A DNA stretch of 63,934 nucleotides, counting the filler, from Octopus bimaculoides (lineage: Eukaryota), in the NCBI RefSeq assembly GCF_001194135.2. It is 4 parts of 4 records of this genome, joined end to end, with 100 filler letters (N's around TTAATTAATTAA, not from the genome) between each part and the next. Parts side by side here need not be neighbours in the genome. Positions count along the whole stretch, not along the records: positions 19,543 to 48,483 come from NC_068982.1; 3 more parts are not named here. One strand, written 5' to 3'. Under the pieces are notes generated by a model. The model saw nothing but the letters and a program-made list of their open reading frames with translations, ran no database searches and was not told the origin of the DNA. Of this stretch, positions 20,096 to 24,100 are shown one piece after another (within the stretch, counting starts at the first letter, position 1; each line of letters starts with the position of its first letter). A program made the position numbers and the translations under genes.

Positions 20096-21133
20096 CATGT
20101 CTTGGATTATCTCTGGTCTCCTTCGTTTCATGTGTTTTACAGTATGGTAAACATCAACAAAATTATCACATTTCATTTTTTCTATCAAGACGTCAGCCAC
20201 GCAGAATAAGCCGCTGTTTGTAGCGCCATCTTTGCAATGGACTACAATTGGTTTATGATTATTTGTACTTTGCCATTCAGCTACATGTTGGATAAGATAA
20301 AGAATATAGTCTCGACAGACTGGTACAAAATTAGGACCTTTCCACTTTTGGTATCGATAAAGTCGAATCTTTCGCACACTTTCTTTTCCAGGTTTTGTTA
20401 CTTTCAATTGAAACTGTTCCAATATTGAATCATAATCGACAATCCGATTTCCGATTTCAACATCGAAATGCTCTGTGCTCCATAACGTACTACCACCGGT
20501 GGACATTTTCCAGTAAGAGACACAAGTGTCGTTTTTGACATTATTATCCATCATGACAATAGTTCTAACATTGTATTCATATATTAATTGCCAAAAGTCA
20601 CCAAGTGTCTCCTTCATTGGAGTTTGTGTCAGTATGTAATGATTTTTACGACTGCATCCATCGAGGAAGACTGCATTAATGTAGGCACTTTTTGCAGACC
20701 GTAATATTGGCCGGAAGTTTTCAGGAGGAAGTATCGCCAAAAAACGATTTTTACTTTTATTTATCTGCAAACGTCCCGCAATAAATTGATCGTCATCGAT
20801 TTTCGGAATAAATCGGCACAAGTTATCAAACTGAATTTGTAAAAACTGTTCTAAATATTGTGGGTTTATATTTTCATAAGTTACATTAAAGTCATATCTA
20901 TCTTGATACATTTCAAAAACAGCATCATATACGAAAAGGAAATAAGCATAAGGTCTCAATGTGAAATTCATTGATTTTCGTATATTCTTTATGATATTGA
21001 ATAAGTTTATACTTCTCTTCTGTCTATATTCTTCTAGAAGGATATCAATAATGATAAAAGTACCAGTCCGGTTGATGCCCGTGCCACAGTGCACTAGAAT
21101 TGGGCTCATGTTTTCAGTGAAAACACGACTAAT
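20096..21133 (-). CDS. RPTP giant exon: D1 signature and C-terminus plus nearly all of PTP D2
   Basis: Acceptor aattatatttttcag, donor CATG|GTAAAT. 1038 nt (346 codons), phase 0-0. D1 signature VHCGTGINRTG (21094-21062). D2 motifs: KNRF, YINAVFLDG, DFWQLIY, VHCKDGATNSG (20242-20210), RRPEIIQDM. Confidence 0.95.
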
Positions 21134-24100
21134 CTGAAAAATATAATTTTATCAGTAGTAGAGAAAAATGAAATTTAAAAAACCCTTATAGTTTTAACAT
21201 GAGATGCATTAAAATTTCAGACATTCGTAAGTTTTTAAAAAAATGTGTAGGTTTCTTGTTTGACTTGTATCTACCCAGGTGATTAATCTAATTACAAAGT
21301 GGATTATTGAAATTGCAAGTTAACATAACGCCATAATGTTAAACATAATGTCGAAATGGGGGGTATTTCTTTTAAAGATATTCGAGTTCAAAGAATAAAG
21401 ATGAATCCCTTAAAATGAAATATAAAACTGCTGTTGACTATGAGATAAGTCGTTTCAAGAAGTAACCGAGAAAATTTAAATTCTGGTAAAAATAATAAAA
21501 GACTAAATATTTTTCAATTACAAGTTCAAGAAGGGGATAATTAGCATACAACACTTCTGTATCCCTAATATTATCGAGGAAGGACATAATTGTTTTAGAA
21601 TTAATGTACTGTAGGAAGAGTTGTATGTTAAGATTTGGCTAGTATACATGCATTGGAAAGGATTCCTAAGAGATCGAATACCTAAAAGCATGGATTGGGT
21701 AAAATGCTTATTAGAGATCTACGAAGTATGAATGATGAGATGAAAAACAAAGCAAAACAGTATTCTGAATATCGTTCAAGAGACAAGAGGAGATAAGATT
21801 ATGTGTGAGATTATATTACAGGAGCAGAGCGATATATTCGGGGTTCCTTAAGTTTTAGTAAACTGTCTCGGAAATACTTGGAAAAATACGACGAATATTG
21901 ATAAAAATGTAGAGAAATACAAAAATTGTTATATTCTAAAAAGGAATTATGTTTGGGAAATTCTTTATCCATTTTAAATCGTTCTTCTTAATGGTAAATA
22001 CTAATAAATACTATTGAAAAGTAAAGCTTCAGTAGCTTATTGAATATAGGTAATTCGGCTTAACGCCGGTAATTCTTCAAATTAAGTTTTAACAGATTCA
22101 GACTTCAAAATAAGAAACATAGTCACATATCAAAATCGATTACAAAAGATAAAATGGAAACTTTATAATCTTTAATGTTAATTAACAAGATGTGTTTAAT
22201 TATTTAACGTTTAATTAATAGTATAAAATGCAGACCCGATCATAGTGTTTAATTAAGATGTTGCTAAAAACACAGAAAACAAAATTTGCTCAAGAAAACT
22301 TTGTTAAAACTGTGTTGTATCATTAATAGGATTTTTATATAAAAGACTTCTAGCATATCTGTTCATTCTTAATACATTCTGGTGGATTTAACTGTGAATG
22401 TTTTTTGTCAACCGAGAACACCTCCTTTTTAGACGAGAGGGGATTCACCGGTGTTATGAGACTATAAGCAAGAGCTCGTGCTTTCGTTAGATTCATCGGT
22501 CTGCGATGGATCTGTGACCGAGGAGGCACAAAATAAGACCTAAACACCGTGGTGACTCAAAGTTCCATTACACCGGTGGATCATGTGTGTTATGAATACA
22601 TAGCTCCTAAAGGGAAGAAGTGTTTTCTGTAGATGAAATACAACATCGATCAGATATTCACGTTCAAACCTGCCAAAACGTATTAAGAACAGATTCTTTA
22701 TTGTTTCGATTCTCGCTGTTCTGTGTGTATCCCGTGAATTACTAGATTTCTACCTGTCGTCAGACAAAGATATAATACGTCAAGACAGTTATAGAAGTTA
22801 CTAAATATGAATAAAGCTTTTCACATGAGACAAAATCCTTGCACAGATAAGCCAACAAAAAGACTCTCTGTAATCGGATGACCAGCTATAAAAAGCGCAA
22901 GTAAAACAAATTCAACCGGGAATTGATAACACACCTCGTTTTACAATTTGTACCTCGTGTACCTTAATGTTAGCTGTTTTGCTGGTGATACTCAAAGATT
23001 TGTGTACTCTTAGATTTGATGTGTACAGAAAGAAAAATATTAAGAAAGCAGAAGTGGGGAAAAAAAGACAACTAAATATATAAAAAAAATGAAAATAAAT
23101 ATAAATAAAATTCCCATACCTTTCGATGCATTTCTAATAAAGGAACAGCATTTCGCGAGGTAATACTTTCTGGCCACGAGAAAAACTCAAAAATACACAC
23201 TTCCTGTACAATTTCATTTCCAACACTGACATTAATCGTTGTGATGCTGTAATCAGCGTAGGTTTGCACTGTAAGTATCTTCATATTAAATATTTCGAGC
23301 CTGAAGTATTCACCTGTTAATTGTGGAAAATATTTGGAGCATTTCAACACGTTTTCTTCAACATGTTTTGTTAACATAACCACTACTTTAACTTTATGTT
23401 GATAGATGAGTCTCCAGAAGTCGCAAACAGTTTCTTTGTTAAACGGACTCTGTGCTGCAATGTATTTATATTGCCTCGCCGTCTTATCACCTATATAACT
23501 AGCGTTGATGTATGTATTATTTGAACACGTATCTGGTTTTAAAATAACACGGTTTCTATCATAGGGCAGTTTTTGCGGGAAACGGTTCAAACAAGTGTTT
23601 TCTCTTTTGCAGGCTTCTTTAAAATTTGATATGTTCGGAGATGTTTCTGCGTAATAGTTATTCAAAGCATCATATTCTTCACGGAAACTTAAAAACTGGG
23701 ACTTTTTGTTCGATTCCTCTCTTTCTAAATTTACAATATCTCCATTTCTATACAACGATGAGTGGTATTTACCGTTTGGCAAACCATCATGAATTACTAA
23801 ATGTCTTCGTTCATTTAAAGAACGAACGGAAGTCCAGTGTTTCTCTAGATCATTGGTGTTTTCTGGGACGACATAATCATCAGTCTTAATTGTGAAGATT
23901 TGTTCTGGTGAAGGTTTACACCATCTGTATTTTCGGCAAAGGAAAAATAACAATATTGCAACAATTGCAACAATCAAAAGTATAAAAATTGGAATAAGAA
24001 TAGCAGCAAGTCTTACAGGAGGAATTGGCACGATTGATTTTGTAGCCCCTTTTGTGCTCGAGAAATTAAATTTTGTGACATTATTTAAGCTACTATATAA

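Follow-up and report, generated by a model that had tools for sequence, protein, structure and literature searches.

An octopus receptor-type tyrosine phosphatase with non-canonical motifs in both phosphatase domains, held by purifying selection and belonging to a lophotrochozoan HCGTG/MVRT clade

The locus and its gene model

The stretch of DNA analysed here (the window; 63,934 nt from Octopus bimaculoides, assembly GCF_001194135.2) includes, at positions 19,543-48,483, a piece of record NC_068982.1 that carries on its minus strand the gene of a receptor-type protein tyrosine phosphatase (RPTP), whose two phosphatase domains, D1 and D2, both depart from the consensus active site. The piece has the character of eukaryotic genomic DNA, with 30-40% GC, (CA)n microsatellites and assembly gaps. 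Six-frame translation of the 20096-24622 region yielded two long open segments (exons A and B), and a tblastn search with XP_014790249.1, annotated as the 'receptor-type tyrosine-protein phosphatase delta' of O. bimaculoides, located eight upstream coding exons within 41599-26760, which encode a Cys-rich, EGF-like N-terminus and FN3 repeats. The features of the gene are as follows.

41599-41454, minus strand: first upstream coding exon found
38313-38176, minus strand: second upstream coding exon found
36722-36602, minus strand: third upstream coding exon found
36213-36002, minus strand: fourth upstream coding exon found
33161-32886, minus strand: fifth upstream coding exon found
29684-29391, minus strand: sixth upstream coding exon found
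28676-28456, minus strand: seventh upstream coding exon found
26933-26760, minus strand: eighth upstream coding exon found
24622-23120, minus strand: exon A (acceptor AG 24624-24623, donor GT 23119-23118), encoding the FN3 end, a juxtamembrane Fn3_PTPRU-type domain, the transmembrane helix, the juxtamembrane linker and the D1 N-terminus through to the WPE loop; translation 100% identical to XP_014790249.1
23119-21134, minus strand: intron of 1,986 bp, phase 0, between D1 motifs 8 and 9, with stops in all frames
21133-20096, minus strand: exon B (acceptor AG 21135-21134, donor GT 20095-20094), encoding D1 from the P-loop through the Q-loop, the D1-D2 linker and D2 up to RRRPEIIQDM

Joined in phase 0, exons A and B encode 847 residues that are 100% identical to XP_014790249.1. 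Every exon junction resolved in the piece is GT-AG, and the coding sequence is spliced from at least ten exons there; the locus is a real coding gene and no chance pattern. A preliminary description of this locus, made from the sequence alone, had taken the reading frame to be intact over ~1370 codons. This claim does not hold, as the interval concerned (20096-23640) comprises two exons and the stop-filled 1,986-bp intron; only an older gene model (A0A0L8I728, 1377 aa) has a length that fits the figure of ~1370.

A search for the N-terminus did not find the first coding exon (residues 1-47, signal peptide) in the piece. The last D2 exon lies outside it (<19543), and exons A and B are the last two coding exons present. 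The C-terminus of XP_014790249.1 reads past the exon-B donor (GT 20095-20094) into the intron (20012-20095, minus strand, 'VNILLVLILLNFFTSIQNSTFFTLYLEF*'), where the O. vulgaris, O. sinensis and Argonauta models splice instead to a final exon starting KQYRF(C/L)Y. The C-terminus modelled for O. bimaculoides is probably wrong, with the true last exon past the edge of the piece (<19543).

Domain architecture and fold

Pfam analysis identified two Y_phosphatase domains (PF00102; E 1e-103), fn3 repeats and a juxtamembrane Fn3_PTPRU domain (PF23144), the last scoring 34.8 bits against a cut-off of 24.7 (80.8 bits in a snail homologue). MAM and Ig domains gave no Pfam match on full-length XP_014790249.1, the N-terminus of which is Cys-rich and EGF-like. 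A single hydrophobic stretch of 23 residues separates the FN3 domain from the phosphatase domains:

24007-23939, minus strand: transmembrane segment AAILIPIFILLIVAIVAILLFFL

The top matches among solved structures are the tandem D1-D2 domains of PTPRA and PTPRE (E 4e-71), followed by LAR and PTPRS. The AlphaFold2 model of D1 (pLDDT 81, pTM 0.85) resembles the catalytic domains of PTPRG, PTPRT and SHP1 in a Foldseek search (TM ~0.85), and the protein tyrosine phosphatase (PTP) fold of D1 is intact. The gene product is a single-pass receptor PTP with a Cys-rich N-terminus, FN3 repeats, an Fn3_PTPRU-like domain, a membrane span, D1 and D2. It has the features that define the tandem-domain RPTPs, namely two PTP domains C-terminal to a single span, adhesion-type repeats and a Cys-X5-Arg motif in D1.

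Active-site motifs of D1 and D2

The motifs of the two domains were compared with those of canonical phosphatases. Positions in D1 are given in PTP1B residue numbering, which we take from general knowledge of the family.

23590-23579, minus strand: D1 phosphotyrosine (pTyr) loop, LNRF (canonical KNRY; Tyr46 to Phe)
D1 motif 4: IAAQSP (canonical IAxQGP)
23344-23324, minus strand: D1 motif 7, KCSKYFP (canonical KCxxYWP), backdoor Cys kept
23176-23156, minus strand: D1 WPD loop, WPESITS (canonical WPDxGxP), with W-P-E at 23176-23168; Asp181 to Glu (codon GAA), Gly and Pro lost
21094-21062, minus strand: D1 P-loop, VHCGTGINRTG (canonical VHCSAGxGRTG), with Gly at C+1, Thr at C+2 and Asn at C+5 (Gly220 to Asn)
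20980-20933, minus strand: D1 Q-loop, RKSMNFTLRPYAYFLF; Arg257 to Met, Gln262 to Arg, Gln266 to Tyr
20752-20741, minus strand: D2 pTyr-loop equivalent, KNRF
20353-20321, minus strand: D2 WPD-loop equivalent, YQKWKGPNFVP, with neither Pro-Asp nor an acidic residue
20242-20210, minus strand: D2 P-loop, VHCKDGATNSG, Cys kept and the essential Arg replaced by Asn

Where a competent PTP carries Tyr46, Asp181, Ala at C+2, Gln262 and Gln266, D1 has Phe, Glu, Thr, Arg and Tyr, and its Q-loop core reads RKSMNFTLRPYAYF against the canonical R..R..MVQT..QY. The P-loop retains His214, Cys215, Arg221 and Thr222, and with them the Cys-X5-Arg cradle. D1 and D2 both combine the PTP fold with catalytic-motif substitutions, which is one of the features that define a pseudophosphatase. 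In the same alignment, the D2 domains of the references PTPRC and PTPRG are as degenerate as that of the octopus; a dead D2 is usual among RPTPs, and it is D1 that stands out.

The six motif readings of the preliminary description (D1 LNRF, WPESITS, HCGTGINRTG and the Q-loop; D2 YQKWKG and HCKDGATNSG) are exact on the minus strand. Its assignment to the tandem-domain RPTPs is borne out by the two Y_phosphatase domains, the Fn3_PTPRU match and the PTPRA/PTPRE structures, while motif alignment agrees with it that D1 deviates at the pTyr, WPD, P- and Q-loops and that D2 lacks both WPD and the P-loop Arg.

A lophotrochozoan clade with the HCGTG/MVRT signature

An indexed homology search returned distant relatives only, namely a full-length transcript with 41% identity and snail proteins with 25-34%, which have LNRF, HCGTG and 'MVRT..QY' in common. 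An exhaustive hidden Markov model search, using a profile built from seven D1 domains, placed about 25 representative clusters with the HCGTG/MVRT signature above all canonical HCSAG/MVQT domains. Judged by cluster names, these clusters include bivalves (Solemya, Potamilus), gastropods (Haliotis, Nucella, Bulinus, Physella, Candidula, Biomphalaria), the chiton Liolophura, cephalopods (Octopus spp. and Argonauta), the brachiopod Lingula and the nemertean Tubulanus.

In a neighbour-joining tree of D1 domains, a simple distance tree with few R2B references (two fish PTPRM-like sequences), the clade is monophyletic (bootstrap 86, with 95 for the molluscs and 100 for the cephalopods) and lies apart from fish PTPRM-like (R2B), PTPRG, PTPRA-like, PTPRC and Ptp69D sequences, with a long octopod stem branch. 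The contigs SRR27666071, ERR14857105 and ERZ21867824 were grouped with the cephalopods by this tree alone (bootstrap 100). Membership of the R2B type, considered on the strength of the Fn3_PTPRU match and of 'kappa-like' names, was rejected: the octopus protein has neither MAM nor Ig, and its D1 does not group with that of PTPRM in the tree.

Phe46, the Gly-Thr pair after the Cys and Arg262 are near-invariant across the D1 domains of the clade, and Gln266 is usually retained. The general-acid position is far more variable, with Asp in about half of the members, Glu in many, and Thr, Leu or Pro in single members; moreover, the Tubulanus D1 lacks the Cys, and one further member has Lys for the P-loop Arg. 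The variable general acid and these single losses of Cys and Arg argue against constraint for canonical catalysis in the clade as a whole. In D2, the P-loop Arg is absent from all molluscs and Lingula, where the loop is strikingly conserved as HC(K/Q)DGAT.SG, and the WPD motif is absent from every clade member examined. The window protein carries the full set of clade marks: N-R-F, AAQSPF, H-C-G-T-G and Arg262 in D1, and HC.DGA..SG without the Arg in D2.

A further set of changes was found in octopods only (O. bimaculoides, O. vulgaris, O. sinensis, an octopod contig and Argonauta), namely WPE(S/C)ITS, G-I-N-R, NFTLRPY.Y and YFP, while other cephalopod-like sequences have WPD- or WPE-KR with the ordinary P- and Q-loops of the clade. 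Several of these non-octopod homologues are intron-less contigs of 5-7 kb, i.e. transcripts. NRF, HCGTG, Gln262Arg and, in nearly all members, the Arg-less D2 are thus old marks of a clade that spans all the major classes of molluscs, Lingula and a nemertean, and not octopus oddities; to these the octopods added WPE-ITS, Gly220Asn, Gln266Tyr and Arg257Met. The clade arose before the mollusc, brachiopod and nemertean phyla split. The preliminary description had overlooked this aspect: most of the D1 deviations that it listed (NRF, HCGTG, Gln262Arg) are ancient across Lophotrochozoa.

Several observations were made on individual relatives. In Bulinus truncatus, four clade members (Btru_051290, _051291, _051298 and _051317) lie close together on one 6.1-Mb contig, which suggests a tandem expansion. 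The clade model of Solemya velum holds three PTP domains and may be a fusion of neighbouring genes. The 6.2-kb transcript-like contig of a non-octopod cephalopod homologue bears a 548-aa antisense open reading frame (ORF) in its 5' part (L002 2-1645, minus strand), which could be transposon-derived or chimeric sequence. Outside the clade, the Ptp69D-like D1 of a spider reads HCSEG, WSD and 'LIRT..EY', and thus has, independently, Arg at the Gln262 position and Glu at that of Gln266. Because this D1 also has the Arg, the change from Gln262 to Arg has arisen more than once in RPTP D1 domains.

Selection, gene decay and RNA editing

The large number of departures from the PTP consensus motifs in both domains, together with a RefSeq model whose C-terminus runs into an intron, might be expected of a decaying or recently dead copy, be it a young pseudogene or a mis-annotated relic, in which the motif changes are neutral damage. 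The comparisons that follow bear on this explanation. The O. vulgaris orthologue (locus L001) carries the same two exons, and Nei-Gojobori estimates over 845 codons give an overall dS of 0.084, a dN of 0.023 and an omega of 0.27. For D1, dN/dS is 0.17 (14 synonymous and 10 non-synonymous changes; binomial p 4e-5 against neutrality), and for D2 it is 0.21 (p 4e-3); across the estimates, dN/dS spans 0.17-0.27 with p ranging from 4e-3 to 1e-8. The intron at 23119-21134 has diverged from its O. vulgaris counterpart by 0.071 per site, besides a 1-kb indel, in agreement with dS, and dN is about four-fold lower. None of the 46 amino-acid differences from O. vulgaris falls on a motif residue.

In Argonauta hians (locus L009), the exon pair and the intron phase are the same, and the intron measures 383 bp. 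Here pN is 0.137 in D1 and 0.146 in D2, compared with 0.228 in the FN3 region of the ectodomain and 0.276 in the juxtamembrane region, while pS is 0.5-0.7, synonymous sites being near saturation. Since Octopus and Argonauta last shared an ancestor, D1 and D2 have thus been under stronger constraint than any other part of the protein. The motifs specific to octopods differ little or not at all between O. bimaculoides and O. vulgaris, O. sinensis, Argonauta and another octopod contig.

The receptor gene is held by purifying selection. The low dN/dS, the intron divergence that matches dS and the conservation in Argonauta together identify a maintained gene, and pseudogene status was rejected on these grounds; no exon in the piece is interrupted and every junction is GT-AG, O. 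vulgaris, O. sinensis and Argonauta have matching open exons and matching degenerate motifs (pN 0.14, pS 0.5-0.7 in the Argonauta comparison), and the intron read-through is a model artefact, since the sister species splice to a last exon KQYRFCY... We regard decay as very improbable. That the gene is maintained had been proposed in the preliminary description, with dN/dS as the check; the values for D1 and D2 are far from 1, and both species comparisons bear the proposal out.

Octopus recodes many transcripts through adenosine-to-inosine (A-to-I) editing, and editing or alternative splicing might in principle restore a canonical active site in the mature protein. In D1, the P-loop Thr at C+2 (ACG, 21082-21080) could be recoded to Ala, and the Asn at C+5 (AAC, 21073-21071) to Gly, Ser or Asp. 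These are the only key D1 changes that are editable toward Ala and Gly; the conversion of Asn to Gly needs two edits, and both cases are theoretical. Codon analysis rejected a rescue of the key residues, as no A-to-I edit yields Asp from GAA, Gln from AGA or TAT, Tyr from TTC, or Arg from the AAC of D2. Editing had been named beforehand as a process that could overturn the pseudophosphatase proposal, and the Asp of the WPE loop, the Q-loop Gln residues and the D2 Arg are beyond its reach. As regards splicing, large constitutive exons contain the motifs, four cephalopods share the boundaries of these exons, and the intron-less transcript contigs of other cephalopod homologues show the same clade motifs. 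A restored active site in the mature protein is, in our estimation, scarcely credible.

Comparison with characterised phosphatases

Several of the altered D1 positions have been studied in other phosphatases. The D181E substitution lowers the activity of PTP1B ~1000-fold, and the WPE-bearing PTPD1 and HD-PTP are inert on peptides (PMC2638020). PTPN21 with its WPE turns over at 1.2/s, against 38/s for the E1067D mutant, and mutation of its Q-loop Gln residues to Ala strongly lowers turnover (PMC10901363). In PTP1B, Q262A lowers kcat ~100-fold and stabilises the phospho-Cys intermediate (PMC10267100). In HD-PTP, Ser at C+2 suffices to inactivate the enzyme and S1394A restores activity, while IA-2 has Asp at this position (PMC2661844). 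Judged by these single substitutions, a steep drop in activity is predicted for D1. Engineered PTP1B substrate traps alter Y46F, D181A and Q262A and still bind.

A close parallel is PTPRU, described as the sole human RPTP with two pseudophosphatase domains; it binds the substrates of its paralogues, is redox sensitive and forms a disulphide between its catalytic and backdoor Cys residues, and its deviations include WPE, a pTyr loop that has diverged and a PTP-loop Thr (PMC7320164). Like PTPRU, the octopus receptor is a tandem RPTP with non-canonical D1 and D2, WPE, an altered pTyr loop, both the catalytic and backdoor Cys, deviations that are evolutionarily conserved, and a juxtamembrane Fn3_PTPRU match. 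The two differ in several respects: the octopus protein has no MAM or Ig and its D1 falls outside R2B in the tree; the pTyr loop is GSRQ in PTPRU, whereas the octopus D1 keeps N-R-F; the loss of Q-loop Gln is not reported for PTPRU, while the octopus D1 has lost both; and the inactivity of PTPRU was measured, whereas that of the octopus receptor is predicted. We also considered whether the P-loop Thr of the octopus clade is the 'unique Thr' of PTPRU and dropped the idea, since that Thr is at C+4 (Cys1085/Thr1089) and the clade Thr at C+2.

Other partial likenesses concern single features. HD-PTP (PTPN23) has WPE, a hydroxyl residue at C+2 (Ser, as against Thr in octopus) and an incomplete Q-loop, but is a cytosolic protein with a single PTP domain and a Bro1 architecture. 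PTPRN and PTPRN2 (IA-2, phogrin) share the receptor-type PTP fold, inactivity through substitutions of the WPD Asp and C+2, and a non-catalytic function; they differ in having one PTP domain, a dense-core-vesicle ectodomain, Ala in place of the Asp, and Asp at C+2. PTPN21 (PTPD1) and PTPRQ have Glu for the general-acid Asp, as does the octopus D1, and retain activity; both, however, keep the canonical HCSAG P-loop, and PTPN21 keeps Q1152 and Q1156 in the Q-loop, where the octopus D1 lacks both Gln. Furthermore, PTPN21 is cytosolic and PTPRQ is a single-domain R3 receptor acting on phosphoinositides, unlike the tandem octopus receptor, which has the WPE of PTPRQ and not its single R3-type domain with canonical P- and Q-loops. 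Finally, the PTP1B traps (D181A/Q262A and D181A-Y46F) change the same three positions as are altered in the octopus D1, which keeps Cys215 and Arg221. They are laboratory mutants of a canonical enzyme, whereas the octopus D1 has Phe46, Glu181 and Arg262 there, thus Glu and Arg and not Ala, in addition to its P-loop changes.

A binding receptor or a slow enzyme

Taking these comparisons together, we consider it probable, with some reserve, that the receptor is maintained, is catalytically dead or very slow, and binds phosphotyrosine rather than turning it over; we infer both the loss of catalysis and the binding or scaffolding role from the motif states. D1, folding as a PTP domain and keeping the Cys-X5-Arg phosphate cradle and an aromatic residue for the pTyr ring, would probably still dock phosphotyrosine or phosphate. 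With no efficient general acid and neither of the water-positioning Gln residues, it would neither be an efficient proton donor to the leaving group nor hydrolyse a phospho-Cys intermediate, and turnover would be abolished or orders of magnitude slower. The receptor might then signal by capturing phosphoproteins, by sequestering them or by serving as their scaffold, and D2 would provide a second docking module; human PTPRU has been shown to act in this manner. The octopus receptor may also be gated by oxidation, in a reversible manner, of its catalytic and backdoor Cys residues. Redox sensing through the retained D1 Cys had been raised in the preliminary description, and remains permissible given that the backdoor Cys (KCSKYFP) is kept beside the catalytic one (the concept being that of PMC7320164).

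Several points weigh against this reading. D1 keeps His214, Cys215, Arg221, Thr222 and the equivalent of Glu115. Glu can serve as a weak general acid, as the weakly active PTPN21 illustrates (PMC10901363), and no single reversion restored activity to PTPRU. Because the inactivity of PTPRU is not traceable to a single motif, the counting of motifs is an imperfect predictor of inactivity. Cys and Arg have been kept in nearly all D1 domains since the origin of the clade, and some chemistry could therefore persist. The AlphaFold2 model and Foldseek matches bear on the fold and are silent on activity, loop dynamics and the shape of the pocket; the transcripts seen are the intron-less contigs of non-octopod cephalopod homologues only; and the inactivity of D1 cannot be proved from sequence.

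The main rival view is that D1 is still an enzyme, either a slow pTyr phosphatase with a rate low but sufficient for its physiological role, or one with an altered substrate or chemistry that uses the Cys-X5-Arg, the Glu as acid and Arg262; the latter, in the clade, could bind a second anionic group, and candidate substrates include phosphoinositides, as for PTPRQ. The P-loop Cys, Arg, His and Thr in nearly all clade D1 domains, motifs (NRF, HCGTG, MVRT) that are conserved and not drifting, and a D1 that is the best-conserved part of the protein between Octopus and Argonauta would all be expected of an enzyme. Moreover, PTPN21 with WPE is weakly active (PMC10901363), PTPRQ with WPE prefers phosphoinositides (PMC2638020, PMC2661844), and in vivo substrates are reported for some putative pseudophosphatases. 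The octopod D1, however, lacks both Q-loop Gln residues required for hydrolysis of the phospho-Cys intermediate and has Thr at C+2, where Ser alone kills HD-PTP (PMC2661844); the general acid is not conserved across the clade (D/E/T/L/P), of which one member is without the Cys and another without the Arg; and the WPE-bearing PTPD1 and HD-PTP have no lipid phosphatase activity (PMC2638020, PMC2661844). Retention of the Cys does not in itself imply catalysis, since inactive D2 domains keep it too (PMC7320164). An enzymatic D1 seems to us rather unlikely, if a serious contender.

The preferred reading, that of a binding receptor, concerns the octopus gene. For the HCGTG/MVRT clade we may tentatively go further, to an idea that we would rank lower still: it could be an ancient RPTP lineage in which the D1 active site, with its Gly-Thr pair, Arg262 and Phe46, was not simply lost and was instead rebuilt for another task, be it high-affinity reading of pTyr by a natural substrate trap or chemistry on a substrate other than pTyr, with a second remodelling (WPE-ITS, Gly220Asn, Gln266Tyr) then fixed in octopods. 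If so, it would represent an independent invertebrate counterpart of PTPRU with a mechanism of its own.

Exon layout, assembly gaps and the neighbouring gene

The position of the phase-0 intron between exons A and B is kept in four cephalopods, i.e. O. bimaculoides (1,986 bp), O. vulgaris (3,034 bp, which includes a 1-kb insertion that O. bimaculoides lacks), Argonauta (383 bp) and contig L003. The exon that precedes it is unusually large (~1.5 kb) and codes for two-thirds of D1 as well as for the juxtamembrane region, the membrane span and an FN3 domain; its counterparts lie at 43649-45145 of O. vulgaris L001, 6001-7623 of the cephalopod contig L003 and 10350-11846 of Argonauta L009. The next exon codes for the remainder of D1 and most of D2.

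Runs of N occupy parts of the introns of the O. bimaculoides gene (31010-31266, 37625-37642, 39297-39935, 42623-43476 and 47883-47940), several of them flanked by (CA)n microsatellites. These assembly gaps account for the apparent dips in GC and for the 'ORFs' open in all frames that appear in the ORF list. The missing first exon could be inside one of the gaps or beyond the piece.

In O. vulgaris, a gene with SRCR and zona-pellucida domains lies directly downstream of the RPTP gene (L001 57538-64759). The deposited Argonauta hians model (2111 aa) fuses the RPTP with its SRCR/zona-pellucida neighbour (L009, 3' half of the model). This adjacency in both species indicates conserved synteny, and the joint Argonauta model is likely a gene-model fusion.

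Significance

The gene had been annotated before this analysis, and RPTPs of the pseudophosphatase type are an established kind. Our literature searches found nothing relevant on an HCGTG/MVRT mollusc clade or on the octopus phosphatome, and the lophotrochozoan clade and the second round of active-site loss in octopods are apparently undescribed in the searchable literature. On the reading favoured here, a double-degenerate end state like that of PTPRU would have arisen independently, and very early, in another animal lineage, where it would have been kept across molluscs, a brachiopod and a nemertean and further modified in octopods. Within the clade, moreover, D1 domains have lost catalytic residues to different degrees, a natural gradation that may be useful for separating the residues required for binding from those required for turnover. 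For the octopus, the locus points to an unstudied receptor of cephalopod cell-surface signalling.

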